A DNA stretch of 64,000 nucleotides from Blastocladiella emersonii ATCC 22665 (Eukaryota > Fungi > Blastocladiomycota). The translations under genes and the position numbers were made by a program. The stretch is taken from the NCBI GenBank assembly GCA_025594325.1, contig JANHCV010000005.1, forward strand, positions 1,922,001-1,986,000, read 5' to 3'. Under the pieces are notes generated by a model, which saw only the letters and a list, made by a program, of their open reading frames with translations, did no database searches and was not told the origin of the DNA. This document shows positions 34,591 to 56,141 of the stretch, in pieces. Numbering within the stretch: the stretch's first letter is position 1; every line of letters begins with the position of its first letter.

Positions 34591-35146
34591 GGTTTACGAG
34601 GTATGTTGGTCTCGGAGTGACATCGTCGCAATATGCAGTGGTTGAGCACCGCGTTCGCGCAAATCACGTTGGGCTCAGCCGTGTGGCGCGGCGCGTCATC
34701 TGCTGGAACCTCATAGTCGGCATCAAGTTGCCTGATACGAGCTGATACGGACTGGAGATCTAGGACCGACTTCCATGCGCAGGGACGCTGAGGCGCGGAC
34801 CTGGGCAGAAGGCGGACTGAACCCACCCTGGCCGTGCTATCGTGTTGGCTGAGAGCGAATCAACGGCTCTTCCACCTACCGACCGTGTCGTACACTGAGC
34901 ACTCGGCCGTCTCCGCCCGAAGCATAGGGCGCCAGACAAAGACTTCGAGAGACAGTGTCCCCCGCGGCATGTGATGCGGCGTGCCGGCGCGGGAGACATC
35001 GGAGAGACGCGTTCTTAGAAGATTCCCATCGGCCGGACGCGTCGCCGCGCGGACGGCGACGATTCCGTCTCCTCACCTCGGCTCCGTCCTCGACTCCGTG
35101 TGGCCGCGACGACGGGCCCCTTGCGCCACTTGCAGCGACTCTCTAT

Positions 35147-37212: not shown

Positions 37213-37862
37213 GTGCGCCGAAGCGCGTGGGCCGGCGGCCGACTGGGATGCCGCATCGGCGACATCGTTGACTCTTCCTAATACCATTAGCACATTAATC
37301 ACCACTCACTCCCTCTTCCCAAGAACCTCGCTTGCATATAATTGGTTCTTTCGCATTGTTCGCTTGGCCTCCCTGGGTTGTGGAGCGCGCGTCGCGTGGG
37401 CCGCTGGATCAAGTGACGGCGAATCTTCGCCAAAGTACTACACATTGACCAGATCCGGCCGTCGTGCTCTCACCGAGGGACAAAAGGGAGTGAAGCATGG
37501 ACAGTATTTCTCGGTGACCTTAGCTCATGGCGAAGCCTTGAAATCCGGAGCGAGGGGCACTTTGCCAAAGTCAAGCTCTCGTACTCGGCGGGCGGGAGTC
37601 GAGTGGACACGTTGCATCGGGGCTGTTGGCGTGGATATCGGGGGACCGTTTCGAACCCTAAAAAAGTTCGGCAATGATAGTCCATCATTGAGGTACCTGA
37701 CCGGCTACGTCCATAGACTGGTGCAACAAAAAAATGCCCTCCTCCCCCCACTTACTAACCACTAACCATAAACCTTTTGCTCGATGGCATTTCTGGTCTT
37801 TCCTTCTTGAATTGTTGCTATTTTCACGCGCGCGCGTGCGGTGCCTCGGGAGACAGGCGGTG

Positions 37863-37924
37863 GAGACGCGTCGCGAAAACGCGTGATCCGATCACGCGCC
37901 GTGTGCGAGACGCGTCGCGCCACA
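37863..37924 (+). promoter_or_regulatory. 62-bp conserved dyad element, copy 1 (function unknown)
   Basis: GAGACGCGTCGCGAAAACGCGTGATCCGATCACGCGCCGTGTGCGAGACGCGTCGCGCCACA: two GAGACGCGTCGCG direct repeats flanking the palindrome CGCGTGATC-N-GATCACGCG. Confidence 0.6.
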
Positions 37925-38073
37925 CTTTTGATCAACTCACCTGAATTTCAGATGCTGTTCACGTTTGAAAAGGTGTAAAAAACTTGTCGGGCATTCATAG
38001 AGGATATTTATTGACTCGCGACACAATTTTTAAATACTTGACTCGAGACCTTCCGCCTGCAAGGTCTGGATTA

Positions 38074-38529
38074 ATGAGCCGACGGCCGTGCATTCGCGTT
38101 GTTAGCCAGACGGGAGGTCAGCGAGCGCAATTACACATGCTTTCTAAGGCGGCTACGTCGGCATGCTCAAGAACTGAGTCGTCGATCACGCTCGTAGTGC
38201 GCCAGCCCGAGAACGTAGCCTGGAGTCGTGCGAAGCGACGCAGCGTCTTCGCCGCCCTTCGCCTCGAGGACTTACAGCTATGTCCGTGTCAGCTCGCCGC
38301 TTCGAATCCGCCGGTCGACTTTGACAACGAGATCATGCAGTGTACGACGGGTGCAAGCGCGGTCGTGGTCTGCAGATTCACTCGGAAGCTGTTGCGCGAG
38401 ATCGGCAAGCTCGACCAGTCGTACCCGATGCCGCAGGTGGCGTGTGCCGGTCTCGATGTAGTCTTCCGGATACACAAGGACCAGGACTGCGTGGAAGTTC
38501 GCCTGCTCAAGCTGTTCGCCAAGCTCTAG
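38074..38529 (+). pseudogene. Truncated/degenerate paralog of the helical C-terminal domain of the 35147 gene (151-aa ORF)
   Basis: CPCQLAASNPPVDF...VCRFTRKLLREIGKLDQSYPMPQVACAGLDVVFRIHK aligns with RCLHHLAAAGLPFEF...VRCAEQLIAQLIQLDKSYPKARVVRSGLGEILRFGK. Confidence 0.6.
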
Positions 38530-39208
38530 CGGCGGCGTCACCGTTACGCGCGGTAGTCGGCGCGGCGCGACTGCCGAGGCGTACGACTCGTGCCGCGGTT
38601 GCCAGTTGTGCTCGTTGTTAGCATAACTCTCTACCATCATTCAGCATGAACGTTCCCACATACACTCAATCTTAGCGCACTAGTTCTTGCCATTCGTCCC
38701 GCTGACGTGAACAATCGTCTTGACTGCCCTACGCTGATGCTGTGATGGGTAGACTGGCCGCATGTCGATAGAGCGAAGAGGGACGACGTTTCTGTTGTGT
38801 TGGGTTTTACAGAGTCGGTCACTGCTCGCCTCGGCCGGGGTTGACGATTCGCTGGTGGGAGCTGGGCGCGAAGGGTACATTGCCCTGGTTGGACTGCTAC
38901 GTTTGACGGGTAGGAGTGGAGTCGTCAGACCGCAGCTTCTCGGTTCATGGCCGTGCGTGTGTCCAGGCCCCCGTTCGAGTCCCTTGCTTTCAAGCAAGGG
39001 CTTTGACATTGCTTCCATCATCATCAATGCGTGTGTGGTCTCTCCGCGCACGGACCATCAACCTGAAGACTCAATTTGGCCTCCCTCCTCCCTGTTGAGC
39101 TAACTACACTAACCTTTTATCATCAGAAACTCGGATTTGTTATCCCCTTTTCGGTGTGATATTCTCGGTTTCGCGGGCGAACGAGGCCACCGCGGGAGAC
39201 GATTGGTG

Positions 39209-39270
39209 GAGACGCGTCGCGAAAACGCGTGATCTGATCACGCGCCGTGTGCGAGACGCGTCGCGCCACA
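39209..39270 (+). promoter_or_regulatory. 62-bp conserved dyad element, copy 2 (inside the spacer)
   Basis: 61/62 identical to copy 1; the only change is the central base of the dyad (C to T at 39235). Confidence 0.6.
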
Positions 39271-39572
39271 GTTCAATCAACTCGCCTGAATGCGGATGCC
39301 GCACGCGCTCAAAACGTTTCAGTGCCGTATGTATCAACCAGGTAGTGTATATACTGACTTGCGAGCCCATGGCTAAGCCCGGACTTGAGGTTTTCCCGGC
39401 CACAGAGTGCGTGGTTCAAGTGAACCCTCGCCAAAGCCCTCCTGTTGTCCAATTCGGCCTCGTTGACGCATTCAAGGACCGTGCTGGTGATCACCGTCGG
39501 GGGTAAGCCGGCCCGCGGTCATATAAAGAGGTGCGTGCGATGGTTCATGTATTGCCGTCAACGTGGCGACGA

Positions 39573-41962
39573 CTAAAGTCTGCGCAGGAGCGAGAGCACC
39601 TCGTCCATGTCGTGCTATACGGAGCGTCGCAAGTCAGTCCCGAACGCAATTTCATCGCACGCCCCCGCGTCCGTACCTGGAGAATGTGTAGCGAGTACAG
39701 CGACGCGACAACGAGCTCGCGCAGCCCGTCGCCCGTCATGTCCGCGTGGTACATCGCGTGGACCGGGTACGCCATCTTCTTGACGGACACGAGCTGGTAT
39801 TGGTTGCTAATTGAGTCTACAGTGATCGGTTGGACAACGTCAGGTCTCTTTGCAAAGCCAGAGGGCAGAACCGTACCAAAGTCGTACATGAGCACGCGCT
39901 GGCCGTATGTTCCGAGCAAGAGCTGGTCGCGCTTGCCGTCCGTCCACCGCAAGCGTGCCACACACGCACATAGTACCGAGTCGAACTGGTCGCTGAGCAG
40001 CAGCGTGTGCGGCTCGACGGCGTCCCACCCGGATCCGTCGGCGCAAATGCCGCGGAAGACGAGAGCAGGCTCGGACGCGGCAACGATCAGCAGGTTGAGC
40101 TGCTCCCGAGTGTCCTCCTGCTCGGTGCCGCCCGGTTTGGTGACAAGGAACTCGATGGCGGTGATGGGCGTGTAGAAGAGCGGGTACTGGAATGTCCGTT
40201 GCCGCGAGCGATCTACTTGGCGGCCAGAGTCAATAACTCGAGGGACGAGGTCCGGTGCCGAGATTCGGCCGTACCAAACGTGTGCGTAACGGAGTCGCGG
40301 TGGTCGACCACGACCTGCAGCTCGCCCGAGCCGTAGCCCAGCGCCAGGTACCGCGCGTCACGGTGCTCAAACGTCGTGAGGTGCGTCAGCCTATTTTCGT
40401 TCGACAAAGTCAGCATGCGCTGAACATGTTCGCTCAAGGGTTGAGAACGTACGCCGATTGCTGAGGCACGAGGTCGGGGAAATGCGCCGCCGTCTCGACG
40501 GCCTGGAACTTGCGCGTTGACGGCACCTCGGCGTACAGGTGCAGCTCGCCGGCCGTGTCCGTGACGCAGATTGCCATGGGCTCGCGGCCCTCGTGGTGGA
40601 TCCTAACTCGGATCGAGTGTGAGCACCGAGGACGTATGAGGCGCCACACGAGAAGTCAACCGTACTCAATGTGTCCGACTTGCAGCGGCTCGTAGTCAAG
40701 CGGGATGATCTGGCAGTCACCGGCGAGGGCAAACAGTTTGCGCTCGAGGGTCGGCGCGTTGCTCGAGGCGCCGTAGATGTGAAGCGCATGTCGCGAGTTG
40801 CTGCTCTCATCGGGACCATCGGGACTCGCGCGGTTCTACAAAAAGTCAGAACACAGGAATCGGCGGTTCAAGCTACGCCAGAGCGTACCGTGATAACCGT
40901 GACAGCGACAATCACATTGGACACGCCCGTCCGAGACGGACCGCGCGCCGGCCTGACCTTGCCGGCGACCACGTCAGCAAAGTTGAACATGGAGTGGCGC
41001 TCAAACGCGTGCATCGCAAGCGCCGCTGCAGACTCGGTCTCGGCCAGCTGGCCAAGCGGGACCTCGACCGTGTTCCAGTACCCGCTGGCCGCCACGATAC
41101 CAAGCAGGTGGTTGTTGGAGCTGACCGAGAGGACGTGCAGGCGCTCCTCGCCGCTCGGCCCAGTTCCCGAGTCAGTCGCAGTCGAGGAAGTGCGCGAGAC
41201 GGACGGTTTGCCGCGAGTCGACGCGGATCGAGCGGGTACGTCCTGGGCAGCTGCATCCACAGCGCGAGCAGACTCGCGGGAAGCACCTGGTGCGGAAGCT
41301 GGACGCCGCTGTTGATCCGCCGCCGCGCCACCCGTAGCGACATCTTCAGGTGCGAGGGTCACGGCCGCATCAGCGACGGGTGCAGCAGTCGCCTGCCACA
41401 CAACGGTCGGGACACCTGTCGATGGTGCGGTGGCGGGGATCGGCGCCATGCTCGGAGTCGCTGTAGGCAGAAGGCTGCTAGTGGTAGAAGCTGTACCGCC
41501 CGCACCGAAAGCAGCTCCCGCGCTGGGCTCTTCGACAAGCGGGAGTGTGACGGCGACTGGCCGCGCTGCGAGCGACGCGCCGCTGCTCGCCGAGGATGGC
41601 GGCCCACCCGCAGCACCAGCAGCGGCGGCGGCGGCGGCTTCACGGGCAGCGTCGAACGGCACGACGGGCGAGACGTGGCACGAAATGGGCTGAAAAGATG
41701 GCGAGACAGCGGCGAGCGCCGCCGCGTCGGGCCCGCTCCCGCTCCCCACGCCCGACGTGTAGACGAAGGCCGGGTGCATGGGGGTGGCGGGCAGCACGGC
41801 GGGCGCGGCCGTGCGCAGGCCCGACGAGCCAAAGACGGTGGTCCGCGCGAAGCCGCCAAACCGCGCGACGTGGATCTCGTGCATCGGGAACGGGACCAGC
41901 CGCGGGAGGGCCGAGGCTGGCGGCGCATGGTCGCTGCCCGGGACATGTTCATTCGCTTCCAT
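39573..41962 (-). CDS. KPTN: Kaptin-like protein (KICSTOR subunit), multi-exon
   Basis: LHLYAEVPSTRKFQAVETAAHFPDL, YLALGYGSGELQV, EPALVFRG, SDQFDSVLC, LLLGTYGQRVLMY and HADMTGDGLRELVVASLYSLHILQ match kaptin motifs recalled from the animal protein. Exon boundaries not all resolved. Confidence 0.75.
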
Positions 41963-42179
41963 TGTGACTCTATTGCATGGACTCGCGGTGCATTCGGGGT
42001 CGGCGCGATCTCGGCCTGCAGGGCGTCGGGTCGGCTGCGGTCTCACAACGACATGATCGCCACGTCGTCGGCGCGCGCGCTCGGGCGACGCCGAGGCCAA
42101 GACATGATGTAGTCAGTGTATATCTAAAGTATATGGTTGGTCGGTTTCACACGGAGAAGCCGAGCGGGACGGGAAGCGC

Positions 42180-45100
42180 CTAGCCGTGCTTGCGCGACGA
42201 CGACGACCGGCGGGCCTCGCCCGAGTGGTGCTTGAGCGGCGACCGGCCCGCGGCGCTGCCGACGTTGCTGCCGCCCACGGCCGACGTCAGCTCGGTGAGG
42301 ATCGCGTCCGTCTTGAGCTTGAGCTGCGACACGGCCTCGCTGAGGTTGTCGGCGGCAGGCTCGCCCGCGACCCCCGAGTCCGACTTTTGCTGCCTCTTGC
42401 CGTGCTGGCCAGCCGCCGGCGAGCCATATGCGGCAGCGGCCGCAGCGGCTGCCTCGCGGAGCTTGCGCTCGTGGCGGCGGTGGTGGTGCTCGCGCTCGCG
42501 GGCACGGTCGTGGGCGCGCGACCGGCCAGCGAGCCCGTCGGCGGACGACGTCGACGACGACGAGTGCTTGGCGGCGGCAGCCGTACTCGACGTCTTGGCC
42601 TGCTGCTCCTTCCACAGCTTCTTGCGCAGCTTGGCGATGGCGACCTGCTCGGACGCCCACAGCTCGAGGTGCGACGCCCGCGCCCCGCGCGCCTCGTTGG
42701 CCGCAATCGCGCGCGCCAGCTCGTCCTGCACAATGACCGGGTACCCCGCCCGCGCGGGCCCGTCGCCATCATCCCGCGAATCCGAGTCGCTGGCGGTGGC
42801 GCTCCGACTCGACAGCGAGCCATCATCCTCATCGTCGGTGCACGACCCACAGGACGCGGGGACGGGTCGGGGGCGGGACCGAGCGGCGGGGACGGGCGAC
42901 GACGGCTGAGCGTTGCGTGGGGCGCGGCGGCTGCTCTGCGGAGGCGCCTGCTGCTGCCGTTGCTGTTGCTCGTGCGACACGGCCGTACGCACCACGTTGA
43001 ACGTGTCCTGCGACCGCGGCGCCGCCACCTTGCTTGGCGATGAGGCGGGAGGACTAGTCGGGGACGTAGCGCGGGGGATGTTGCCACCCGCACGCGCCGC
43101 CTTGGCGGCCTCGCGCAGACGGTCCGCGTTCGAGCGGCGGGCGAGGCGGCGCTGGAGGTCGACGAGGCGGGCCTGCCGCTGCGGGTCTAGGACCGGGATC
43201 CCCGCCGCCGCCCCAGACCCGTCACCATTACCGCGACCGCCGCCGGCAGCTGCGCGCTCGGACTGCGGGGGCGCCGACGGGGCCACGGCAAACGGCAGCG
43301 ACGCGCACTCGGCGGCGAGCGACTCGACCTGGTCGCTCGTGTCGAGCGCGACGGGGAGCGTCCCCTCGACCAGCGTCCGCAGCTCGCTCAGCGTGCGCAG
43401 GCCCGCCGCGAGCCCGTTGAGGGATGCCGCCGCTTCCTCGGATGCGCTGAGTCCCGCCGCAGACTGCTGCGACTCGGCCGCCACGCGATTGGCAACGCGC
43501 AGGGCATCGAGCGCGGCCGATCGGACGGAGGCCCACGTCGCGGCGAGGTCCTTGGTCTCCTGCTGCACGGTCGCCACGCCGGCCACACCCATGTCAGCCG
43601 ACAGGTTGCCGATGTGGGCCAAGAACTCGGCGACGCCGGTGCGCGCGCGGTGAGTGTCCTCGATCGTGTCCGAGATGGCCTGGCTGGCCGAGCGGAGGAC
43701 GCCGCGGCCGCGCGCAATCGCGTCGCCGAGCCGCTGGATGCGGTCGCCCGACCACTCGTGGACGCACAGGCCGGCCGTGGCCTGCAGCTGCGCCTGCGCC
43801 CGGGCGAGCGCCGACGCCGACCGCTGGATCTCGGTGGTAAGCGGGGCGAGGCGCGAGCGCATGGACCCGACGGCGGCGAACGCGCTGGGCGAGCGCGCAA
43901 ACTGCGTCACGTCGATGCGGTCGAGCGTGGCGTGAATCTGCGCCGCGAGGTTGCGGCTCGACTGCACCGCGTCGGCGAGCGCCTGCACGAGCTGCCCCGC
44001 GGGCAGGATCGTCTCCTCGGCCGCAATCGACTCGAGCGTGTGCGCGAGGGCGAGGAGCGCCGTCTCGTCGGTCCACGCACCACCCCCCGCCGTCGTCGTG
44101 GGATTCGAGCCCGGGTTATTCGGGTCCGAGCCGGTGCCGCCATCGGGGCCGACTGGGCGGACGGGCGCCCGCAGGTGGGCCAGCGCGTCGTCGAGCTCGC
44201 CCATGACGCTGGCGCCCTCGGCCTGCGCGCACGACAGCTCGGTCAGCGACCGCACCGCGCGGCGCCACTGCGACCGGACGGCCTCGTCGAGCGAGAAGGC
44301 CGCGTGTGCGAGCAATAGGTTCGGGACCGTACCCGTAGTACCGTTACCCGACACGGCCTCGAGCGCAAAGGGCGTACACGACACGCACGAGTGGGTGAGG
44401 CGGCGCAGCGGTGCGAGGTGCCGCGGGTCGACGACGCCGACCTGGTACTTTTGCGTGTTCTCGACCTCGGCAATGTGCAGCGCGCCCGAGATCTGCGCCG
44501 AGTAGTAGTCGAGCAGCTGCGCGCACATGCCGCCCGCGTCCTGGCCCTCCTTGCTGGCGCGCTCGGCGAGGGTCTTGGCGATGATGAGGCGCGCGATGCG
44601 CTCGCCGAGCGCCACGTCCGGGCCCAGCGTCGCTGGCGCGTGGAAGTGTGCGAGCGCCGTGTACAGCAACGCCTTGCCCTGGAGCGCGGCCATCCAGCCG
44701 GCGGGGAAGCGGCCGTTCTGGGCGGACGACGACGATGACGACGAGGTGAGCGGCGCAAGGGCCCGGTGGATGGCCGCCGAGATGGCGCGACCGCCACCCG
44801 CCACCCCGCCGCCATGGTGGCCCGAGCCGCCGTGGTCCGAGAAGGCCGAAAATGACGCGCCGGAGGAGTACGACGACGACGACGAGGACGACGACTTGGA
44901 CGCGCGCAGGGCGAGCTCGTAGTGGTCGGCGGTCTGCGCGGCAATCTGCGAGGTGAGCGTGCTCGAGGCCGCGTCGAGGTTGGCCTTTTCGACAAAGCAC
45001 TCGTGCGCCTGGGCGAGCATGGTCTCGCTGAGGGCGTGCAGCGTCTGCTGGCTGAGGTCGGCCGCCTTGCCGAGCTTGAGGCGGAACCGCGGCGCGAGCA

Positions 45101-46202
45101 CGTCGCGGACGTAGGCAAAGACGCCGGCGGCACGCTGAAAGTGGCCCGCGGCGACCTTGATGCCGTCGGGCGTCCAGATGGGCTGGTTGGCGGCGAGCTG
45201 CGAGTAGAGCGCGCCGAGGTTGAAGAGGACCGCCGCCTTTTCGACCTGGATGCACCGCGCGGTGACGGCTACAAGTTCGCATGGTGTGAGCGGCTAGCCG
45301 GGCGGGTCGTGGGCAAGATGCTGGATGGACGGCATACCCTTCTTGTGCGGCGCAAAGGCGTCGAACCAGGTGAATGCGACGTCGACCTCGTCCGTGGCGA
45401 ACGGGAAGCGCTCCTCCATCCACAGCAGCAGCGCGTAGTACTCTTGGAGCCGGGCGAGGCCGCCGTCGGACCGCTCGGGCGCGCCGGCGTGGATGCGCAG
45501 CTGGTTCATGGCGTACCAGTGCGAGTCGAGCGGGAGCGCGCCAGGCCAGAAACCCGCCGCGGCGTGCGACAGCCCGGTCGCGTAGTTGTCCGAGGCAGTG
45601 GTAGCGCCCGGAGCCGACGACGGCGACGAGGAGGCCTCGCCGAGAATCTTGGGCAGGAGGGCATCGCGCAAGTTGAGAAAGTGCTGCTGCTGTTGCTGCT
45701 GAGGCGCGGGAGATGACGGCGGCGAACGGTTGACGGTTGCCGCGATGGCGTTCGGGTCCGAGGCGACAACACCGCCCGCCGGGCCCGCAAACACGCTCTG
45801 CGCGTCGACGGCCGAGCTCGTGCCCGCCGCACTCGCGGGTGGCCAGGCCGCTGGGTGGTGCGGTGGAGGAGGGCTCACGACAGCGGCAGCGACCGACGAC
45901 ACGGCACCCGCGACGCCCTTGCCGAGGCCGAGCAGCTTGTTGACGGGGAGCGCGGCGAGCGACCGGCGGGCGGCAGCCGAGGTGGTCGGGACGAGCGGCT
46001 CAAAGTTGCGCTTGGCGGGGACGACGAGGAACGACGAGGTCGCTGCCCCGCCCGCGGCAGAAGCTCCACCACCACCACGGCGGTGCGGGCTGCTGCGCGA
46101 TCCGTCGCTGCCGAGGAGCCCCGCGGCCGATCCGGCGTCCCGGTTGAGCGCCGTCTGCGTGAACGTCTGCCAAAAGTTGCTCACGTCCGCCGACGTCGTC
46201 AT
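42180..46202 (-). CDS. BRO1-domain protein (ALIX/Bro1/Rim20 family) with low-complexity inserts
   Basis: QEYYALL...RFPF...FTWFDAF, EKAAVLFNLGALYSQLA, HFQRAAGVFAYVRD, DLSQQTLHALSETMLAQAHEC; intron 45269-45337. Confidence 0.88.
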
Positions 46203-46481
46203 GGTCGGTCGGTCGTTTTGCGGTGTAGGCGGATCCGGCGTATGTCGCTCGACTCGATGCGTAGAGATAGATGGATGGATGCGTCTAGCGTTTCTTGGGA
46301 GGAGGAGTGCAAGATCAGAGCGTATCTTGAGAGGGGGAGAGAGAAACGCGTCGGCGCGTGCTCACGTGCGCCTGAGGCACGCGTTTCGCCTCGCCTCCCC
46401 TTGAGCCTCCCCTTCCCGCATCGCCCCCGGTGCACCACCAAGCCAGTCCAAAAATGAATGAATGTATACCCCAGCCAGCAT

Positions 46482-48149
46482 TCACGCATCATAGTCGCGC
46501 GCCTCGAACCGGTCCAGCGAGTACTCGGTCGCCGTGACGCGGTTCCCGCCAAAGAAGCGGCCGTGCATGACGCCCTGGCACGCCTCGCGCTCGGCCACGC
46601 TCGCAAACTTGACGAACACGCGCACGCCCGTCTCGTTGGGCAGCGCCGTGTTGACGTGCACGACCAGCAGCTGCACCGCCCCGTGCCGCGCGCACTCCTC
46701 CTCGACGTCCACCTTGAGGTCCTCGTCCACCTCGTGCGGCTGCACCATGTTGCACAGCAGCAGCACGGGCGACGGCGCCTCGGCCTCGAACTTGGGCAGC
46801 GCCGGGCGCGGGCCCGGGTACAGCGGCGGCGGGACCACGCGCGGCCGCGGGAACCGCGACAGGCCCTGCATGCCCTCGGGGAACGGGCCGCCGACCAGCG
46901 TCGGGGTCACGAGCAGCCGCTCGCCGCCAATCTCGACCTGGTCGAGGGTCTGCACCGCGCGGTTGGCCGCGAGGGCCGTCTCGTACTCGACATAGCCGTA
47001 CGACTTGTGGCGGAACGTGGTCGTGTCGGGCTGTTTGGGGTATGGGGTGAGCGGGGATGAACTCGGGTGGTCAGTGTCAGTCCAAGCGGGATCGCGGGAA
47101 TCGCAGAGCACACGTACGCAGAGCGAGAACTGGGTAATGGTCCCGAACGGGGCAAACAGCTCGCGCATCTCGTCCTCGGCCAGCAGGTCGTGCACGTTGG
47201 CAAAGTAGACGCGGGTCGGGAACCGCGGCGGAAAGTGGCGCCAAATGTCGTCCGTGTACGCGTTGGTGTACTTGACCTTGATGTTGCGGCCGTCGAGCTC
47301 GGCGCCGTCGAGCAGGCGCACCGCGGCGGCGGCGGCCTCGGGCGCGTCGTACTCGAGAAAGCACCAGCCCTTGTGCGTGTTGAGGTCCGGGTCGCGCGTC
47401 ATGGACAGCTCCTTGATGAAGCCGACCTTGGAGAAGAGGCCGCGGATGGTCGCCTCGGTGGCGGCGGTCGAGATGTTGCCCGTGTAGATACGGTTGATGG
47501 TGCGGTTGATGACGGGCGTCACCAGGGCGGCGGGCTTGCGCTCGATGCGGATTGGCGCGGTGGTGGCGGCGGAGGAGCGGTACCGAGACCGAGTGCGGCT
47601 GCGGCTGCGGCTCCGACTCTGGCTGGGACTGCGACTGGGGCTCCGGCGGCGGCTGCGGCCCGCGGGACTGCGCGAGCGCCGGTACGCGCTGCTGCGGGAC
47701 CGGCCGCCGCGGGAGCGGGAGCGGGAGCGGGACCGCGATCGAGAGTGCGACCGACGGCGCGCGTTCCGCGACCGGGACCGCGACCGCGAGGGGGACCGGG
47801 ACGGGGAGCGCGGCGATCGCGACCGCGCGCGCCGGCTGCGGCGGGACCGGCTCGGCGAGCGGCTGCCTGCGCTCGGGCTGCGGGCCCGGCTGCCGCCGTC
47901 TCGCCGCCGCGACTTCTCGCGCCCGCGGCTGGGTTCCCGCCGGTCGCGCGAGTCGGCGCGGCGGTCGGACGGCTCGCCGTTGGCGCCACCCTGCGAGTCG
48001 TCCGGCGGGTGGTGGTCGTCGGGCCGCGCCGCGCCCTGCGCCTCGAAGAGCGTGGTGACGAGGGCGGCGTAGTCGCGGGCGGCCTTGAGGCGGTTGGCCT
48101 GGTCGTCGGTGAGGAAGGGGGCCGCAGCAGCCGTTGCAGCGAGTTCCAT
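46482..48149 (-). CDS. PUF60: PUF60/Half-pint-like splicing factor (RS region, 2 RRM, C-terminal UHM)
   Basis: RIYTGNI...HKGWCFLEY, RVYFANVH...HKSYGYVEY, UHM VLLLCNMV...VEEEC...RVFVKF...GRFFGG; in-frame intron 47031-47117. Confidence 0.78.
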   Translation of the reverse strand: MELAATAAAAPFLTDDQANRLKAARDYAALVTTLFEAQGAARPDDHHPPDDSQGGANGEPSDRRADSRDRREPSRGREKSRRRDGGSRARSPSAGSRSPSRSRRSRRARSRSPRSPSRSPSRSRSRSRNARRRSHSRSRSRSRSRSRGGRSRSSAYRRSRSPAGRSRRRSPSRSPSQSRSRSRSRTRSRYRSSAATTAPIRIERKPAALVTPVINRTINRIYTGNISTAATEATIRGLFSKVGFIKELSMTRDPDLNTHKGWCFLEYDAPEAAAAAVRLLDGAELDGRNIKVKYTNAYTDDIWRHFPPRFPTRVYFANVHDLLAEDEMRELFAPFGTITQFSLCVRVLCDSRDPAWTDTDHPSSSPLTPYPKQPDTTTFRHKSYGYVEYETALAANRAVQTLDQVEIGGERLLVTPTLVGGPFPEGMQGLSRFPRPRVVPPPLYPGPRPALPKFEAEAPSPVLLLCNMVQPHEVDEDLKVDVEEECARHGAVQLLVVHVNTALPNETGVRVFVKFASVAEREACQGVMHGRFFGGNRVTATEYSLDRFEARDYDA

Positions 48150-48520
48150 GGGGTTATTGAGTGTTCAAGAATGATGAGGGAAAGATCAAACGAAGCGAGC
48201 AAAGACGACATCGAAATCGAATCGCAACGGACTCGACAGCTTCGTCACGCGACCACGCGGAAGGTGAAACGAGACGCGTCGGCGGTCGCGCTTTTGTTTT
48301 CGCGCGATCGCGTCGCGGCGGGAGATGTCCGGTCGTGATACGCCGGAATATCACCAGTGTCCCCCGCCCGCCCTGTCCCAAAATGACATGATGAAACAGC
48401 CCGATGGGGGGCAATGCTGCCTTGCCCGCCTGCCCCCGCTGGCTCTTGATGAAGCAAGCGACCCCTCTCCCTCACCTCACCTTACCTCACCCTTGACCCG
48501 GTCAAGTACCAGCCACCGAA

Positions 48521-50995
48521 ATGCCTCGAATGAATGAACGACCCACCTCGGCGATACCGCCGGTGCCCGCTGCCTCGGGTAGCCCGGCCACCGCAGCGGC
48601 TGCCGGCCACTACTCGGAGGTCCCCGCTGGAGCGCACCCGCTCGCGGCCGCGGCGAGCCCCACGCCGTCACACTCACGCAGCAGCAGCACCGCCGCCTCG
48701 CCGCCACTTCCACCGAGCAAGCCGGCGCTCCTCGCCAGCGAGGACAAGTGGATCGACTGCTTCATCCGGTCCGAGACGTCGCTCGACGAGTACACGTTCG
48801 TCAAGACGCTCGGCCAGGGCACCTTCGGCAAGGTCAAGCTCGCCAAGCACGTGCCCTCGGTGCAGCACGTCGCTATCAAGATCATCGACAAGGCCACCAT
48901 CAAGACCGACAAGCAGAAGCTGAGCGTGCGCCGCGAGGTGCGCCTGCTGTTCCTGCTGCGCCACCCGCACGTCGTGCGCGTGCTCGACGTGATTGAGACC
49001 GCCGACCAGATCTACATTGTCATGGAGAACCTGCCGCGCGGCGAGCTGTTCGACCACATTGTCAAGAACCACCACCTGAGCGAGCCCGAGGCCCGCCACT
49101 TTATGCGCCAGATCGTGTCCGCGCTCGAGTACTGCCACTCGGTACGGCCGTTCTCCTGTCGCTGGGTCGTGCTGGCTGCCCACCGTGCGCTGACCCACGA
49201 AACCCGATGCGGGATGTGTAGCACTCGGTCATCCACCGCGACCTCAAGCCCGAGAACCTGCTGCTCGACTCGGACAACAACGTCAAGCTCATCGACTTTG
49301 GCTTTGTCAACACGTTTGACGGCGCGTCCCTGCTCGACACGTTCTGCGGCTCGGTGCGTTTCCACTTTAGCCAAGGTCGAGATGTATTGATTGACACTGA
49401 CGACCGGTCCCCGCTCAATCGTAGCCGTTTTATGCCAGCCCGCAGATGATCCGCGGCATCAAGTACTCGGACCCGTCGTCCGACATTTGGAGCCTGGGCG
49501 TCATCCTGTTCGCCATGCTCAGCGGCAGACTGCCGTTCGACGCCGAGGACATGCGCAAGCTGTACGACCGCATCGCCTCGGGCGTGTTCCGCTGCCCGTC
49601 GCACTTTTCGATTGGTACGCTTGCTTGCTTGGCTCTCGGTGCTCGATCCCCACCGACCCGGCTGACTGACTGATCACCCACGTCCATTCTTGATCTGTAG
49701 ACGCGGTCGACCTCATCCGCAAGATGCTCGTCGTCGACCCCAAGAAGCGGTACACGATCGACCAGGTCAAGGCGCACCCGTGGCTCGACTGGGACTCGGC
49801 CAGCCCGTCGCTCACGCGCGGCGAACACTACGACTCGCTCCGCCAGCCTCTCGTGCCGGTGCGGCCCGAGCTCGTCGAGGTCATTCAGTCGTTTGGCTTT
49901 GACGCGGACGTGATCCACGACGCGCTCCTCGACGCCAGCGGCGACGATGGTGACCGCGCGACGGAGCCCAAGGACCAGCAGCAGCAGCAGTCCCACCCGG
50001 TCGTCGGCTACTACCGGCTGCTGTCGATGCGGTCGCACCCGCCCCTGTCCGCGTCGTCCTCGAAGCGGTCCGACTCGCAGTACGCGAGCAGCGGCACCCT
50101 CCTCATGGACCCATCGCCGCCGTCGCCGTCAGCAGCAGCTGCGCCCGCCGGATCCAGCTCGGCTGTAGTCGCTCCCGCCTCGAGCAGTACATCCTCGGTG
50201 GGCTCGGCGTGGGCCAGTCCCTCGCACGCTCACGGGCACGCGTCCGCCAGCGGGTGTTCCGTGCCGGTCGCGGTCCAGCACCACCGCGTCCGGAGCAGCG
50301 ACGACGCCTACTTTATCGCCGCGTACCAGCAGCAGCAGGAGGACTGCCACGGGCAGCAGCAGCCCCACCACTACTACAACAACAGCAGCAGCGGGGGTGG
50401 CGTGTCGTTCCCGGCGTCGGGCTCCGGTCCCAGCTACGGCGGCGGGCAGCAGTACCACCAGCGCGGCCACAGCGTCGATCCGGGCCACCTGCAGCTCGAC
50501 AGCCGCCCGCGCCCGAGCTCGCCCAGTTCCGCCCTGGCCGCCGCGCAGCTCCCGCTTGCCTCGTCCTCGTCGCCGGCGTCGCCCTACCACCAGCACCAGC
50601 ACCACCAGCACCAGCACGCGCCATCATCCTCCCCGTGTTCGACGCGGCCGTCGCGCGCGTCGCTCGTGTCGCTCAAGACGTGGTCGGTCGCGACGCAGCA
50701 CCACCTGGTCGACCTGATGCAGGCCGTGGAGCGCACGCTGGCGGCGCACGGGGTCCAGCGGGTGAAACGGAGCGAGTACGTGTACGCGTGCGTGCGCAAC
50801 CCGGACATGGCGTGGGAGGTGCACCTGCACGTTATTGCCGCCGACGGGTCGCTGTGCGCGCAGTTCAAGAAGATGCGCGGGTCCGGGTGCCAGACCGTCG
50901 TCAGCTTCCTGCTCGCCGAGATGAAGGCGTGCCTCGACAGCCTCGACCGCCCGCTCGGCGGTTACGGCGAGGGTCACGGCCACCGGTACAACTGA
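48521..50995 (+). CDS. AMPK-related (MARK/Kin1/SNF1-like) Ser/Thr kinase with probable C-terminal KA1 domain
   Basis: [37 protein letters not shown]; introns 49142-49221, 49354-49424, 49615-49700. Confidence 0.9.
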
Positions 50996-51199
50996 GCGGG
51001 CGCGGGTCGGTTGGTACCTCGGCGCCGCGCCGTGCCGTGGGACTTGCTTTTCTGGGAGTGAGTTTCTATGTATGTGCTGATGGAGATGTAGATTAGAATA
51101 GAACTCGGTGAACACGGTCAGCGAGTCTCTCAATCGACGTGACAAGGAACCGAGGAAGGCACGCGGGCAGTAGGAATCAAAAATGCATCTATGAGAGTG

Positions 51200-52162
51200 C
51201 TACACGAGAACCACCAAGTTCCGCGTCTCGGTGCCCGGAACCGTGCCGGTGATCGGGAACGAGGACGTCGAGTCGTCGTCGGCCAGGACGGCGGGCGCGG
51301 GTGCCATGATCTGCGACCGCTCGATCGGCGCCGAGACCGAGCGAGGAGACGCGGCTCCCGCCGCAGCCATGGGTGGAGGTGGTGACGCAACGTTGCGCAT
51401 GGCTTCCTCGCCGCCGGCTCGGAGCTGACGACCTCGATTCCGGCGGCGGCCGCCGATGAACATGGCGGCGACGACGGCCACCACGGCGAGACCGATGAGC
51501 AGACCGGCCCACCAAGGGAACCCACTCGAGGAATTGGACGACTGGTCGTCGATCCCGGAATCCGAGTTGGTCCCCGCCGAGGGTGCGAGTGCCGTGGCGG
51601 CAGCACCCGTTGGCGAGGCCGTTTTGGACGGATCTTGCCGTTCCGTCGCCCCCGGGGTCGCGCGGACAGCGGTCCCCGTGACCGAGGGCGGGCGCGTCGC
51701 TGATGGTGGCGCGCCGGACGCGGGCACCTGGGACGGCGTGATGGAGACGGTCGTCGGCGGGGTTCCGACCGGGTTACCAGCGGACCCGGACGCGACGCGG
51801 ACGGCAAACTGCGGGACGCCGAGCCGGCCAAAGTCGCTGCTCGCGGCGCCGTTCTCGGCGACGACAACGGACCAGCTGCCGCCGTCCTTGCCGACATTGG
51901 TGGGCACGGTCCAGGTCAGCGACCCCTGCTGGTTCGGGACGGCGGTCTTGATGGGGGTGCACGATGCGGGGAAGTCGGCGGCGCCGCACAGCCACAGGTC
52001 GACGAACTGGACCACGTTGAAGGAGGGCCACAGCTGGTTCCACGACAGCGTCACGGGCTGGCCGACGGTCAGGACGGGCGGGTCGGCCTGGCCGAGCGGG
52101 TTGTTGACGAAGGTCGGGGCGCCGACGGCCGAGGGCGGCGACGGGGCAGCGGGCGAGGCCAT
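51200..52162 (-). CDS. Single-pass membrane protein with Kre9/Knh1-like Ser/Thr-rich GPI-anchored-type N-terminal domain
   Basis: VGQPVTLSW...VDLWLC...NQQGSLTWTVP, Ser/Thr/Pro stalk, TM WWAGLLIGLAVVAVVAAMFI followed by RRRNR. Confidence 0.6.
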   Translation of the reverse strand: MASPAAPSPPSAVGAPTFVNNPLGQADPPVLTVGQPVTLSWNQLWPSFNVVQFVDLWLCGAADFPASCTPIKTAVPNQQGSLTWTVPTNVGKDGGSWSVVVAENGAASSDFGRLGVPQFAVRVASGSAGNPVGTPPTTVSITPSQVPASGAPPSATRPPSVTGTAVRATPGATERQDPSKTASPTGAAATALAPSAGTNSDSGIDDQSSNSSSGFPWWAGLLIGLAVVAVVAAMFIGGRRRNRGRQLRAGGEEAMRNVASPPPPMAAAGAASPRSVSAPIERSQIMAPAPAVLADDDSTSSFPITGTVPGTETRNLVVLV

Positions 52163-52892
52163 TCGGGCGGGCGGGCGGGTGTCGAGCAAAGGCAGCAAGA
52201 AGCAGTCTACGGCAGGCAGTGATACATGGCACGTCGCGCTGGTTGATGTTGACGGAAGAGGAGGGGCCCTGAGTACGAGTCTGTGGTTCGGCGAGCGCCA
52301 CCGCTGCGGCGGATCGGATTACCCCGGCTGACCGCACGTGCGCCATCGCGTCCATCGAGCCCATCCGAAAGGGCCGTATTGCGGGCGCCGCCAAAGTACG
52401 CCACTGCGCCACATCGTTACAGTTAATCTATACGCGCGCCACACCAACAATCTGCTACATCCATCTCGACACGTGCCCGCGATCATGGGATGCTGGGGAG
52501 CTCATGAAACGCAGGCGCACGCCGCCACCAGCGCGCCGGCCAATCGGCGGCCGCGACGTACGCCGCGATCCTATCATCTCGGGTCATGGGGCCCTTGGGC
52601 TATGCCATCAGCAACGGTCCGCCGCCTCGGGAGCTATCGGGCGCGCGATCTCCCCGGGTTCCCGCGCGCTTGAGCGCCTGCTTGCGCGCTGGAAGGGGAA
52701 GTCGCCGTCCGCCGCCTCGCGCGCTTCCCACCCGGCCGCCCGGCCTCGGCCGTTGCGCGGGGGTATAAAGACCGGCTGCCCCCCGCTGCCTGAAGTCCCC
52801 TCGCTCTCCACGCTCCTCAATCGCTCGCATCACACGAGCATCACCGTGATCCTCGTCTCGAAGCCCCTCTCTCCCACTTCTACCCGATCATC

Positions 52893-54435
52893 ATGGGTGC
52901 TGCCGCCGACGCCAAGCCCGCGAGCATCGCACAGCCCGGCACGCTCGGCCGGAGCCTGGGTGTCGTCCAGGGCGCTGCCCTCATCACTGGGTACGCCTCG
53001 CTCGACCGCAACAGCCCTCACGCGGCCCGACTAACCTCGACGTCTCCGATCTAGTGCCATGATCGGCAGTGGTGTCTTCACCAACCCGGGCAAGGTCGTC
53101 GGGATCATGGGCGCCGTCGGGCCCTCGCTCATCCTGTGGGTCCTCGGCGCCGCCATCGCCTACTTTGCGTCCATGAACTACGCCGAGCTCGGCTCGCGCA
53201 TCACCGCCTCGGGCGGCGACGCCCCCTTCCTCGACTACGCCTTCCAGAGCCCGCGCCGCTTCTTCGCCAGCATGTACTCGTGGACGCGTATTTTCCTCAT
53301 CAACCCGGGCTACAACGCCAGTCTCGCCGTCATTGCCGGCTCCTACCTCACCTCGGCCTTCCCGCACGTCTTCCCCGAGGACCCCGAGGTCGCTGGCGGC
53401 GAGTACTACGCCAAGCGCATCGGCGCCGTGATCCTCGTCGTCCAGACCCTCGCGTGCGTGCCCTCCAACAAGGTCGCCGGCAAGTTCATCACCTTCGTCA
53501 CCTCGATCGCCGTCCTGTGCCTGCTCGCCTTCTCCGTGACCGGCCTCTTTGTCCTGTTCGGCGTCGCCCCTAACGTCCGCAACCTCGAGAACTTCTCTGC
53601 CGCCCACCTGTTCCAGGGCACCACCACCAACCCGGGCGACTGGGCCTCGGCCCTCTTCAAGGTCCTGTGGGCCTTTGACGGCTTCGCCAACCTGGCCTCC
53701 TCGCTCAGCGAGCTTAAGGACCCCGAGCGCAACATCCGCCGGTCCACCGTCATGGGTATCAGCACGGTCGGCCTTCTCTACATCCTCGCCAACATCTCGT
53801 ACCTCGTGGTCCTCAGCTACTCGGACATGTCGACGCTCGGGTCCGGTGTCGCGTCGCAGTGGGCCACCAACGTGTTCGGCCCTACCGGTCAGGTCATCGT
53901 GATGCTGCTCATCTTCCTGTGCGTGTGCTCGTGCTGCTTTGTCACGCTCTTCTCGGCCTCGCGTATCGCCCACGCCACGGGCGAGTCTGGTCTCATGTAC
54001 CCGCCGCGCTTCTTCTCAACGGTCAACGCGCGGTTCGGCACGCCCATCAACGCCCTGCTGTTCAACTTCGCCATCTCCATGGTGCTCCTCATGGTCCCGC
54101 AGGGCGACACGTTCTGGTTCATCATCGACCTTGTCTCGTACCCGCTCTGGGTCTTCTACGGCCTGACCGCCTTTGCGCTGCTCACCATCAAGCACCGCGC
54201 CGCCGGCAGCATCTTCGCCCACGACGACAACTTCTCTGGCGTCCAGGTCAACGCCATCGGGCCCGTCCTGATCGTGCTCGTGTCGCTGTTCCTCGTCATC
54301 TTCCCCTTCTTCCAGGAGTCGATGGTGCTGTCCTCGTCGCTCGCGTGGGCGTGCATCGCCGTCGGCGTCGTGCCCTACTTCCTGCTCTCGCGCGGGAGCA
54401 ACAAGGACAAGGCCGCTGGCGCTGGTGTCGTGTAA
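52893..54435 (+). CDS. APC superfamily L-type amino acid permease (LAT/Mup1-like)
   Basis: GAMIGSGVFTNPG, YAELGS...SGGD, WAFDGFANL..ELKDPERN, 12 TM; intron 52991-53054. Confidence 0.92.
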
Positions 54436-54936
54436 ACACGACTGGAGAGGATGGTGACGCGACGAGTATCGTCGTAGACGGAGTCCATGAAGACCAAGAG
54501 GAGGGCGAACCCACTATGTACATTTTATATCCTTCCCTCCTACACTACACTACATCTGATTTAGGATCAAACTTATCGCCTTTCACGCGAAGGAAGTGGG
54601 CCATCCTTGGCCACGTCACAGCTGGACAACCCGTGGTCAGACTTCAAAGGGGCCTTGACACTTGGTCGCTGCTGCGCGGACCAAACGCACACGAGTCACG
54701 ATCGGTTTTCATCTATGAAATCAACTCTGACTTCCTCCGGCTACTACCCAGGAAGCCTGAATCAGTCAAGCAAGGATGCTTCGGCACTGGCAGAAGCGAA
54801 TTGAGCCAAGCGAGCGATAGAACGACGGCTATTGGCGAGCTTTGTCATGAACTCATAAGAACGGCAGTTAAATGAGATGATCTCGCGAGTCAAACTTTGA
54901 AATGATCATGGAATCGCGAATCGGCGAGTCGCCATC

Positions 54937-54998
54937 TGTGGCGCGACGCGTCTCGCACACGGCGCGTGATCGGATCACGCGTTTTCGCGACGCGTCCC
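54937..54998 (-). promoter_or_regulatory. 62-bp conserved dyad element, copy 3 (inside the spacer, mirrors copy 2)
   Basis: Reverse complement is 61/62 identical to copy 1. Confidence 0.6.
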
Positions 54999-55423
54999 CA
55001 GCAACTGTCTCCCGCGGTGACCTGGCATTTTGCACGCGTGTGAAATGTAAAAGATATGACGAGATAAAAGAGCAACTGCACCCGAATAAGCACAACAAAA
55101 AGGTTGCAACCTGGTGAGGGAGGAGTGGGAAGCTGGCACGCTCGATGCGCGTCCAGGAAGCCCCTTGACGGAATTCAACTTCGAAACTTGATCAGGGCTT
55201 CGAAATGGGGTCGTCCTGCGCAAGGCCATCGACTCGGATGCCACACTTGCCACTTCGACTCCCACTCACCGATTGTGGTCGCGCAACCAGAGCAGAGTCA
55301 CTACCGCACTGTGAAAGCTGGCGAGCGAGTGGCCTTTGTCAGTGTTAGCGGCGCTCCCGAATGCTTGCGTGTATCCGGTTGCGGCAGACGATGCTGCTTT
55401 GTATGTCCCACTCGCATGTCAAT

Positions 55424-55930
55424 TCAACGAGATGCGAAACACGACACCAGTTCAGGCCATGCCAGCTCAGACCAACAGTTAGGCAGTGAGCTGTGGCTAA
55501 CGAGCTTGCCCGCGCAGTCCTCGTCCTGATACAGACGAAGGATAGCCTCGAGAACGCCATACGACACCCGCGACATCGGGTACGACTGGTCGAGCTTGCC
55601 GATCTCGCGCAACAGCTTCCGAGTGAATCTGCAGACCACGACCGCGCTTGCACCCGTCGTACACTGCATGATCTCGTTGTCAAAGTCGACCGGCGGATTC
55701 GAAGCGGCGAGCTGACACGGACATAGCTGTAAGTCCTCGAGGCGAAGGGCGGCGAAGACGCTGCGTCGCTTCGCACGACTCCAGGCTACGTTCTCGGGCT
55801 GGCGCACTACGAGCGTGATCGACGACTCAGTTCTTGAGCATGCCGACGTAGCCGCCTTAGAAAGCATGTGTAATTGCGCTCGCTGACCTCCCGTCTGGCT
55901 AACAACGCGAATGCACGGCCGTCGGCTCAT
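55424..55930 (-). pseudogene. Truncated/degenerate paralog of the helical domain; identical to the 38074 ORF for 119 codons, then a different but homologous tail
   Basis: ...LDQSYPM|SRVSYGVLEAILRLYQDEDC versus ...LDQSYPM|PQVACAGLDVVFRIHKDQDC. Confidence 0.6.
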
Positions 55931-56079
55931 TAATCCAGACCTTGCAGGCGGAAGGTCTCGAGTCAAGTATTTAAAAATTGTGTCGCGAGTCAATAAATAT
56001 CCTCTATGAATGCCCGACAAGTTTTTTACACCTTTTCAAACGTGAACAGCATCTGAAATTCAGGTGAGTTGATCAAAAG

Positions 56080-56141
56080 TGTGGCGCGACGCGTCTCGCA
56101 CACGGCGCGTGATCGGATCACGCGTTTTCGCGACGCGTCTC
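56080..56141 (-). promoter_or_regulatory. 62-bp conserved dyad element, copy 4 (in the right arm)
   Basis: Exact reverse complement of copy 1. Confidence 0.6.

Follow-up and report, generated by a model that had tools for sequence, protein, structure and literature searches.

A conserved 62-bp element on both sides of an inverted duplication in Blastocladiella emersonii as a candidate promoter module of a small gene family

Fungal MCB/SCB clusters are bound by MBF (Mbp1/Res-Cdc10) and SBF (Swi4-Swi6), as at CLN2 of S. cerevisiae (SCB) and at cdc18 and cdc22 of S. pombe (MCB). In the 62-bp element described here, four copies of which lie in one region of the B. emersonii genome, several ACGCGT cores and CGCGAA(A) likewise fall within about 60 bp, at most a few hundred bp before an ATG, and its short motifs recur in many promoter gaps of this genome. 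The element differs from such clusters in that all 62 bp are invariant, spacers included, the likeness being one of motifs. None of the described MCB/SCB clusters includes a 19-bp perfect dyad around GATC-N-GATC, and the genes served here belong to an orphan family, truncated copies included, rather than to the known G1/S genes.

The consensus sites are ACGCGT for MBF, CGCGAA for SBF and GCGSSAAA for E2F; SBF is present in all fungi, and basal fungi have E2F/DP alongside it (PMC4862756). The E2F/DP sites of animal, plant and basal-fungal cell-cycle genes (TTTSSCGC = GCGSSAAA) have a counterpart in the element's TGTGGCGCG, which resembles TTTGGCGC, although its assignment to this class is one of resemblance. 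Two further systems invite comparison. The FRT site within the inverted repeats of the yeast 2-micron plasmid, at which Flp carries out inversion, and tyrosine recombinase cores in general share with the element a dyad with direct repeats, one or two per inverted-repeat arm, in head-to-head arrangement about a spacer. With MITEs and solo transposon ends it has in common a short discrete unit with sharp boundaries that is found over several loci.

Four copies of the element in a duplicated locus

The window, meaning the whole stretch of DNA that was analysed, comprises 64,000 nt of B. emersonii ATCC 22665 (assembly GCA_025594325.1, contig JANHCV010000005.1). Its relevant features are as follows.

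29590–38494, forward strand: left arm of a large inverted duplication, 99–100% identical to the right arm; its outer limit lies beyond
35147–37212, forward strand: orphan 'knuckle' gene P0001 (H9P43_005315, 676 aa); 651 bp separate its stop codon from the arm element downstream
37863–37924, forward strand: left-arm copy of the 62-bp element, in a conserved block at 37844–37946
38074–38529, forward strand: 151-aa ORF absent from the annotation, paralogous to the C-terminal module of P0001 but truncated
39209–39270, forward strand: left inner copy of the element, in a block at 39190–39291, with T for C at the palindrome centre
54937–54998, reverse strand: right inner copy, whose first 13-mer starts GGGAC, not GAGAC
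55424–55930, reverse strand: mirror fragment ORF, whose C-terminal tail departs from the left copy past the boundary at 55510
55510–64000, reverse strand: right arm of the inverted duplication, running past the window end
56080–56141, reverse strand: right-arm copy of the element, the same sequence as the left-arm copy
56792–59051, reverse strand: knuckle gene of the right arm, encoding 689 aa owing to additional 21-bp repeats

A sequence-only reading of this DNA had described four copies, starting at 37863 and 39209 on the forward strand and at 54937 and 56080 on the reverse strand, and all four are found there. Each consists, in order, of the 13-mer GAGACGCGTCGCG, AAAA, a 19-bp palindrome, CCGTGTGC, a second 13-mer and CCACA. 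The palindrome, CGCGTGATC-N-GATCACGCG, and the pair of 13-bp direct repeats with starts 44 bp apart are both as had been proposed, the palindrome being present in every copy; even with three mismatches allowed it occurs exactly four times, against an expectation of 0.19. Each inner copy is 61/62 identical to the left-arm copy, again in line with the earlier reading, and the two inner copies are 60/62 identical to each other, so that core identity across copies is 97–98%. The three distinct copies each differ by a private substitution. That in the left inner copy is the C-to-T change at the central base of the palindrome that had already been pointed out, and that in the right inner copy affects base 2 of the first 13-mer.

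The 62-bp extent holds for the core, and the conserved block proves larger, at about 84 bp (37844–37927) and up to 103 bp between the left-arm and left inner copies, at 89% identity. Near flanks are 74–84% identical over 19 bp upstream and 64–72% over 39 bp downstream; farther flanks are 58–65% identical against 57.8 +/- 3.3% for shuffled sequence, and more than about 40 bp out the likeness is that of shuffled DNA, which bears out the view of a core conserved amid weakly similar flanks. Variable bases concentrate where a spacer separates CGGGAGAC from the first 13-mer. This graded conservation, with variable bases between motifs, is the pattern expected from binding sites. To read conservation amid decay as selection on a protein-bound site, as had been done, is reasonable but unproven.

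The arms are at least 8.9 kb long, a lower bound, and decayed homology continues beyond their boundary at 38494/55510. The arm copies lie 570 bp inside this boundary and the inner copies outside it, by 715 bp on the left and 512 bp on the right. The left inner copy is 304 bp from the 3' end of a kaptin-like gene and the right inner copy 503 bp from the 3' end of a methionine permease gene. The contig carries the left pair of elements once more 72 kb downstream, as a third copy (99.97% identity over at least 14 kb); this copy begins at 33188 and stops short of the permease gene, since there is a single coding copy of P0014. The element is absent from a second large inverted repeat of the contig (L007/L008; at least 11.6 kb, 99.98%). 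The contig thus carries several very young large duplications, inverted and direct, which bears on assembly quality and gene counts.

In the NCBI annotation the spacer and neighbouring genes encode transporters, a P450, a methyltransferase, a kaptin-like protein, BRO1, RRM, kinase and Kre9 proteins and a permease. GC content and the inverted repeat had suggested a herpesvirus-like arrangement of inverted repeats and unique region, with a replication origin; this was rejected, as the spacer genes are cellular (BRO1, RRM, kinase, permease). An exact look-up of six window ORFs returned none on record (0/6), because the genes have introns.

Motif content and distance from gene starts

Each copy contains within its 62 bp three ACGCGT cores, one ACGCGC and one CGCGAAAA, the make-up of an MCB/SCB-type cluster. 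There is no exact E2F consensus site in the element; TCGCGAAA fits at 7/8 positions. The motifs from which the element is built, namely GCGACGCGT (the MCB core), CGCGAAA (SCB/E2F-like) and ACGCGY..GCGCCAC, recur in true promoter gaps of the genome. There are 18 occurrences of GCGACGCGT in the window, where base composition predicts 1.75. Annotated matches outside the element sit in head-to-head promoter gaps (e.g., 30533 and 35037), and a double site at 17604–17628 lies about 115–135 bp before the ThrE ORF. The composite ACGCGY-N0-3-GCGCCAC occurs outside the element at 34683 (mirror 59329) and at L003, L004, L006 and L008. In annotated DNA these matches are all intergenic, with 0 genic, and every one of them faces a same-direction gene start 93–705 bp away. 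Two of the promoter features adjoin P0001.

34683–34696, reverse strand: composite ACGCGCCGCGCCAC, 93 bp upstream of the methyltransferase start; mirror at 59329–59342
34990–35050, forward strand: P0001's own promoter, with CGGGAGACA, GAGACGCGT and, about 30 bp on, GGACGCGTCGCC; mirror at about 58980–59035

The composite ACGCGCCGCGCCAC is an independent promoter instance of the 3' motif of the element. The composite is not specific to one family, as both the methyltransferase gene and a gene at L008 have it.

P0001 has four paralogues in the genome (P0002, P0003, P0005 and P0006), and a Pfam search of the five family proteins and the fragment ORF found 0 domains. The C-terminal module of P0001 repeats 1323 bp downstream (81% identity in nucleotides, 34% in amino acids), and the elements are 1346 bp apart. 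The fragment ORF at 38074–38529 has a coding-like GC content of 61/46/73 at codon positions 1/2/3. GACGCGT and GCGCCAC of the arm element stand at −165/−157 from the ATG of this ORF at 38074; the corresponding GACGCGY/GCGCCAC positions are −166/−158 in P0003 and −163/−155 in P0006, and in P0002 the composite is at about −211/−203 from the likely true ATG. In three of the four paralogues (P0002, P0003 and P0006) the composite lies 149–197 bp before the ATG, pointing at the gene; in the arm copies the distance to the ATG of the fragment ORF is about 150–211 bp. P0001 and P0005 have looser versions of it in their promoters. Accessory motifs of the family promoters are GGGAGAC/GTCTCCC, GATCCGATC and CCTGAA, and the arm element has the composition of a family promoter. 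CCTGAAT comes next, at −134 in the arm and −126 in P0006, and the exact 15-mer GACGCGTCGCGCCAC is common to the element and the P0006 promoter. The palindrome core GATCCGATC is also in the P0002 and P0003 leaders about 60 bp before the ATG; these two proteins are 41% identical, and the roughly 110 bp before their ATGs are about 90% identical. In P0001 itself the promoter motifs lie 100–156 bp before the ATG, and by these motifs its promoter is probably related to the element, though diverged.

When the whole element was aligned locally, comparison with the P0001 promoter and with about 120 kb of other loci gave scores of 29–38 against a shuffled maximum of 34. Whole-unit homology to the P0001 promoter and paralogue loci was dropped because these scores are marginal relative to shuffles, and the case for promoter homology rests instead on the motifs and their positions.

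A further possibility raised earlier was that the element is a fragment of a high-copy young MITE or SINE. K-mer depth speaks against this, giving only four exact core copies: depths of 148 : 300 : 440 : 598 in run X3 stand in the ratio 1:2:3:4, and the four exact cores are fully explained by the known duplications.

Taken together, the promoter reading is backed by motifs, orientation, distance from the ATG, homology to paralogue promoters, low copy number and the absence of a link to breakpoints. Among the candidates first put forward, the MCB/E2F-like promoter module is favoured, as motif content, orientation and ATG distance match the promoters of the genome and of the family. The four elements are probably a well-kept promoter module of a small gene family duplicated both in tandem and in inverted orientation. 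Two observations count against this reading: all copies lie between convergent 3' ends in the NCBI annotation, and there is no plausible ORF downstream of the inner copies, the longest being a 44-codon remnant.

Other explanations for the conservation

The non-motif spacers AAAA and CCGTGTGC are unchanged across the four copies, whereas true paralogue promoters retain short motifs only. Binding-site clusters usually tolerate spacer changes, and the invariance of AAAA and CCGTGTGC therefore counts against a plain binding-site cluster. Invariance of the whole 62 bp would reflect either selection on densely placed binding sites or gene conversion over short tracts. In its full form the latter would make the elements former family promoters that are now functionless relics, kept identical or recently made so again, in the absence of selection, by short-tract ectopic conversion among the copies 1.1–1.3 kb apart and between the two sides of the inverted repeat. 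This we regard as unlikely. The locus is clearly prone to homogenisation, with arms 99–100% identical over at least 8.9 kb, decayed homology beyond the boundary and a third copy at 99.97%; the invariant spacers, which real paralogue promoters lack, and the inner copies with no downstream gene also fit. A conversion tract would, however, give one sharp block, and similarity here falls stepwise (98%, about 75%, random) with variable bases between motifs. In addition, each of the three distinct copies carries a private substitution, an island of 62–84 bp is a very short substrate for repeated conversion, and diverged 57-bp units bounded at the 13-mers exist at unlinked loci.

Base-perfect conservation, which is not seen in ordinary binding-site clusters, would be explained in either of two other ways, which jointly we consider distinctly doubtful. 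The 57–62 bp unit may be a self-perpetuating promoter cassette, copied or converted whole and bounded by the 13-mers, or it may be a binding platform of the zinc-knuckle proteins for family-wide autoregulation. A cassette of this kind could drive transcription after gene decay, for example antisense into the kaptin-like and permease genes.

It is improbable that the 57-bp unit (13-mer, 31 bp, 13-mer) spreads as a small mobile or copy-and-paste cassette, whether MITE-like or as a portable promoter, and came to several loci, these four among them, in that way. The genome does hold roughly five or more diverged copies of the unit elsewhere: contigs from other loci match only from 37862/3 to 37914–37919, a stretch that begins with one 13-mer and ends with the other, and then continue into unlike sequence, and at least 10 distinct flanks of these units are missing from the window and from all other loci examined. 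Flanks of the local copies, too, are random-like beyond about 40 bp. Against mobility stand the low number of exact cores (four) and the failure to find the full unit at other B. emersonii loci, about 120 kb in total. The ends of the element are direct repeats and, apart from the 8-bp GACGCGTC palindrome, show no terminal inverted repeats; the conserved block is not flanked by target-site duplications. Unlike MITEs, then, the element has four exact copies, lacks both hallmarks and carries host-promoter motifs; its local copies also resemble one another in a graded way between about −50 and +40 and stand at a conserved distance from a homologous coding module.

There is a slim chance that the conserved sequence acts as RNA, in the form of a 5'-leader hairpin controlling translation or stability of the family transcripts. 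The predicted hairpin has a GC-rich stem of 8–9 bp, the left inner substitution falls exactly at the centre of its loop, and the hairpin is part of the centroid fold, in which the two 13-mers pair to close it. The approximately 110 bp before the P0002 and P0003 ATGs, which contain GATCCGATC, are well conserved and are probably 5' UTR. Fold energies computed as DNA or RNA are nevertheless no better than those of shuffles (z = −1.0 to −1.4), and a DNA dyad equally predicts tolerance at the central base. The element lies 150–211 bp before the ATG, its motifs occur in either orientation in promoter gaps, and the variants are too few for covariation to be counted. Rfam gave no match at the gathering threshold (best E = 0.7 in a permissive scan, chance level), and a tRNA search gave none.

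Least credible of all is that the elements are tyrosine recombinase or transposase sites whose head-to-head geometry drives inversion of the spacer or made the duplications: copies do face each other in inverted orientation across the spacer, and the dyad at their centre, with its flanking repeats, is like a core-type site with arm-type repeats, but the boundary at 38494/55510 is about 500–715 bp from every copy, the third copy does not start at an element (33188), the second inverted repeat has none, no rearrangement joints were seen in four sequencing runs (assembled contigs only), and the 8.9-kb identical arms are a far better inversion substrate for ordinary homologous recombination. The element differs from FRT-type sites on the same points, with no recombinase gene, no breakpoint at the copies and no joints, and with copies both within the identical arms and beyond them. 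The sequence-only reading had listed a recombination or transposase end site among its candidates and a linked recombinase or transposase as something to look for; none is present among the annotated neighbours, and the element turns out to be akin to family promoters, with no link to rearrangement points, an outcome which that reading had itself set against the idea. The finding opens no new mechanism of genome rearrangement.

The proposed promoter module and its significance

Under the promoter reading, each element would serve one unit of a short tandem array as its upstream regulatory and core-promoter module. The array would run from the full gene with its diverged promoter, through an element with the truncated 151-aa paralogue, to an element with a remnant. 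An old inverted duplication would have mirrored this array on both sides of a 15.7–17 kb spacer. Later homogenisation of the outer part may have made the arms identical up to 38494/55510 and thereby left the inner units in decayed sequence. The module comprises two same-orientation GCGACGCGTC sites (MCB core ACGCGT) four helical turns apart, one CGCGAAA site (SCB/E2F-like) and the 19-bp dyad, with two more ACGCG cores around GATC-N-GATC, and ends in the genome-wide promoter composite ACGCGTCGCGCCACA, facing the downstream gene. G1/S-type factors (MBF/SBF and/or E2F-DP) are the putative binders. Selection on tightly packed, overlapping sites would hold the 62 bp, and gene conversion over short tracts between neighbouring copies may assist it. 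In that case the inner copies would be active promoters with no annotated gene, directed antisense into the kaptin-like and permease genes.

If the promoter reading is correct, it would provide B. emersonii, a developing model organism, with a compact, sequence-defined regulatory module that combines an MCB-like site, an SCB/E2F-like site and the GCGCCACA composite. Early-diverging fungi are thought to keep both E2F and SBF networks, and the module might then be used, as a natural probe or reporter, to tell which factor acts on such sites.

The element and its duplicated setting

This window of nuclear DNA comes from Blastocladiella emersonii ATCC 22665 and corresponds to about 1,922,001–1,986,000 on contig JANHCV010000005.1 of a PacBio assembly (GCA_025594325.1; 34.27 Mb, 21 contigs; PMC9730499). 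Its inverted-repeat arms (left from 29590 or earlier to 38494; right from 55510 to past 64000) are 99–100% identical. The sole sizeable difference between them is the copy number of a PAAPAPP-encoding 21-bp tandem repeat (35172–35317 versus 58687–58853), which accounts for the 676 and 689 aa encoded by the left and right knuckle genes. All four copies of the 62-bp element were confirmed at the coordinates given by the sequence-only reading, the left ones within a 2.36-kb unannotated gap between two gene 3′ ends.

Genes and element copies
35147–37212 (+), orphan knuckle gene P0001; 3′ end bounds the left gap
37863 (+), element, left arm copy
39209 (+), element, inner-left copy
39573–41962 (−), kaptin-like gene; 3′ end bounds the left gap
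52893–54435 (+), methionine permease gene; bounds the right-side (mirror) gap
54937 (−), element, inner-right copy
56080 (−), element, right arm copy
56792–59051 (−), second P0001-like gene; bounds the right-side (mirror) gap

Against 0.19 expected, the window contains four occurrences of the 19-bp palindrome, a count that stays the same when up to three mismatches are allowed. Each copy contains two GAGACGCGTCGCG 13-mers whose starts are 44 bp apart. Three distinct versions (arm, inner-left, inner-right) differ pairwise at 1–2 of 62 bases; the inner-left substitution is indeed the central base of the dyad, and the inner-right substitution is at base 2 of the first 13-mer. The conserved block is larger than 62 bp, at ∼84 bp, and extends up to 103 bp for arm versus inner-left. 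Identity is 74–84% over 19 bp upstream and 64–72% over 39 bp downstream of the element, and distant flanks (58–65%) are no better than shuffled sequence (57.8 ± 3.3%). Because far-flank identity equals the shuffled level, the proposed island of conservation amid decayed flanks, borne out by the identity profile and alignment, is real, and the element is a statistically solid observation.

A third copy of the left pair, 72 kb downstream and directly oriented (window 33188–47212 = locus L001 8042–22066; JANHCV010000005.1 ∼2,026,946–2,040,970), is 99.97% identical to it and contains both left elements. It covers part of the left arm and left spacer, with methyltransferase, knuckle, kaptin-like, BRO1 and RRM genes. 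The 33188–47212 interval is a minimum extent, the right end being beyond the compared DNA, and the copy must end before the permease gene, since the permease is encoded only once. A second inverted pair on the same contig at ∼1.58–1.64 Mb (L007 1–11644 and L008 1–11645) is 99.98% identical over arms of 11.6 kb or more; each arm ends ∼75 bp past P0015, a methionine-permease paralogue 78% identical to the window permease, and the upstream 10 kb of each arm is without a called gene. Large near-identical inverted duplications seem to be recurrent on this contig. A long ORF (7800–10220, +) in the window's unannotated left portion encodes a homeodomain (Pfam E = 8e-14).

Motifs and upstream regions of the knuckle gene family

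On its minus strand the element starts TGTGGCGCG-ACGCGTCTC and finishes TTTTCGCG-ACGCGTCTC; between these end motifs is the dyad, in which ACGCGT/GCGCGT cores flank GATC-N-GATC. The MBF site is ACGCGT, the SBF consensus is CGCGAA and the E2F consensus is GCGSSAAA; all fungi have SBF, and basal fungi have E2F/DP (PMC4862756). The window contains 18 matches to GCGACGCGT versus 1.75 expected from base composition, and the ten outside the elements are, wherever annotated, located in promoter gaps.

Matches to GCGACGCGT outside the elements
17604–17628, double site, ∼115–135 bp ahead of the ThrE ORF
30533, inside a 152-bp head-to-head gap
35037, 110 bp ahead of the P0001 ATG

Outside the elements, annotated DNA carries the composite that forms their 3′ end (ACGCGY-N0-3-GCGCCAC) at 34683 (mirror 59329) and in the comparison loci L003, L004, L006 and L008; all these hits are intergenic and directed at a same-direction gene start 93–705 bp off. 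The window's unannotated left portion has two copies of the same promoter composite, as GGACGCGCYGCGCCACAC (10628–10641 and 15699–15712), beside a diverged ∼4.5-kb tandem duplication (repeats 11418–11664 versus 15950–16205).

Pfam finds no domain in P0001; the genome holds four paralogues of it (P0002, P0003, P0005 and P0006). The 19-bp palindrome is absent near all four; paralogue upstream regions contain the same pieces as the element.

Element pieces relative to the ATG
P0003: GACGCGY/GCGCCAC at −166/−158
P0006: GACGCGY/GCGCCAC at −163/−155, counted from the probable true ATG (L006 5638)
P0002: GACGCGY/GCGCCAC at about −211/−203, counted from the probable true ATG (L003 5754)
P0001: CGGGAGACA, GAGACGCGT and GGACGCGTCGCC at −156 to −110
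Arm element: GACGCGT/GCGCCAC at −165/−157 from ATG 38074 of an unannotated 151-aa ORF

The annotated P0006 and P0002 starts look too far downstream; family-typical N-termini at L006 5638 and L003 5754 begin MHQKAPDAS (compare MHQHAPDAS in P0001) and MHPIQEHG, the P0003 start. CCTGAAT lies downstream of the composite at −134 in the arm and −126 in P0006, and the palindrome centre GATCCGATC is also in the P0002 and P0003 leaders. These two genes are ∼90% identical over ∼110 bp before the ATG and their proteins 41%, a precedent within the family for a leader or putative promoter more strongly conserved than the protein. The conserved stretch (L003 5650–5760 versus L004 5900–6006) includes CGATCCGATCC and CTCCTGAAGCC.

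The 151-aa ORF (38074–38529, +) is a truncated paralogue of the P0001 C-terminal knuckle-plus-helical module (81% nucleotide identity over 48 bp; 34% amino acid identity), with coding-like codon-position GC of 61/46/73. In its mirror (55424–55930, −), the last ∼30 residues, past the inverted-repeat boundary, differ from the left copy. Motifs, family upstream pieces and ATG spacing make the MCB/E2F-like promoter the best of the candidates first proposed, and we consider it reasonably likely that the element serves a duplicated orphan gene family as a promoter module composed of genome-wide MCB/SCB/E2F-like motifs.

Base constancy, copy number and rearrangement

Paralogue promoters retain short motifs only, whereas the three local versions retain all 62 bases, and two explanations remain. 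Sites may overlap so densely that selection constrains every base, as favored by the stepwise drop in similarity from the core outward and by the location of the variable bases between motifs. Alternatively, short-tract gene conversion among nearby copies may maintain the likeness, at a locus that is evidently prone to homogenise.

Copy number was read from Logan contigs of four runs placed on window 36800–40800, all from one sample that is possibly the assembly's source.

k-mer depth in X3, the deepest run
Inner-right single-copy flanks: about 148
Left spacer: about 300
Arm: about 440
Element core (55-nt unitig): 598

The 1:2:3:4 ratio is exactly the assembly's prediction and gives only four exact cores in the genome (two arms, L001 and inner-right) and two copies of the T variant. 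Several other contigs, with single-copy depth, align only across the interval between the two 13-mers, these included (37862/3 to 37914–37919), beyond which their sequence is unrelated; one, 759 nt long, has 5 differences in 76 bp. Ten such flanks are missing from the window and every fetched locus, implying some five or more diverged copies at other loci. Together, the low exact copy number and the diverged copies argue for a low-copy dispersed unit and not the scattered high-copy MITE that the sequence-only reading had named as its refutation. Partial, diverged look-alikes (window 13539–13650 and 14195–14250; L009 ∼16440–16490) contain MCB cores, a CGCGAAA-like site and a half dyad in a different arrangement, and are probably the sort of relatives behind the extra contigs.

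A recombination site driving inversion, or a transposon end, had also been suggested and is not supported by any breakpoint, recombinase or second-repeat link. The inverted-repeat boundary is 500–715 bp away from each copy, the third copy starts at 33188 and stops before the single permease gene, and the L007/L008 pair inverted around the permease paralogue lacks such an element. The 8.9-kb identical arms, rather than a 62-bp site, would be the obvious inversion substrate. Annotated neighbours include no recombinase or transposase, and the Logan contigs of the four runs, a weak test, contain no deletion or strand-switch joints. The evidence also speaks against an RNA gene (no Rfam match, no tRNA, folds not better than shuffles).

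Proposed history of the array

For the promoter-module reading, the shared upstream pieces, ATG spacing and truncated P0001 paralogue suggest a tandem array of promoter plus full gene, element plus truncated gene, and element plus remnant. This array would have been copied in inverted orientation long ago, its outer part later being homogenised up to 38494/55510. The inner copies, which lack an ORF of their own, face the kaptin-like gene and the permease gene at their 3′ ends; if active, they would yield antisense or non-coding transcripts.
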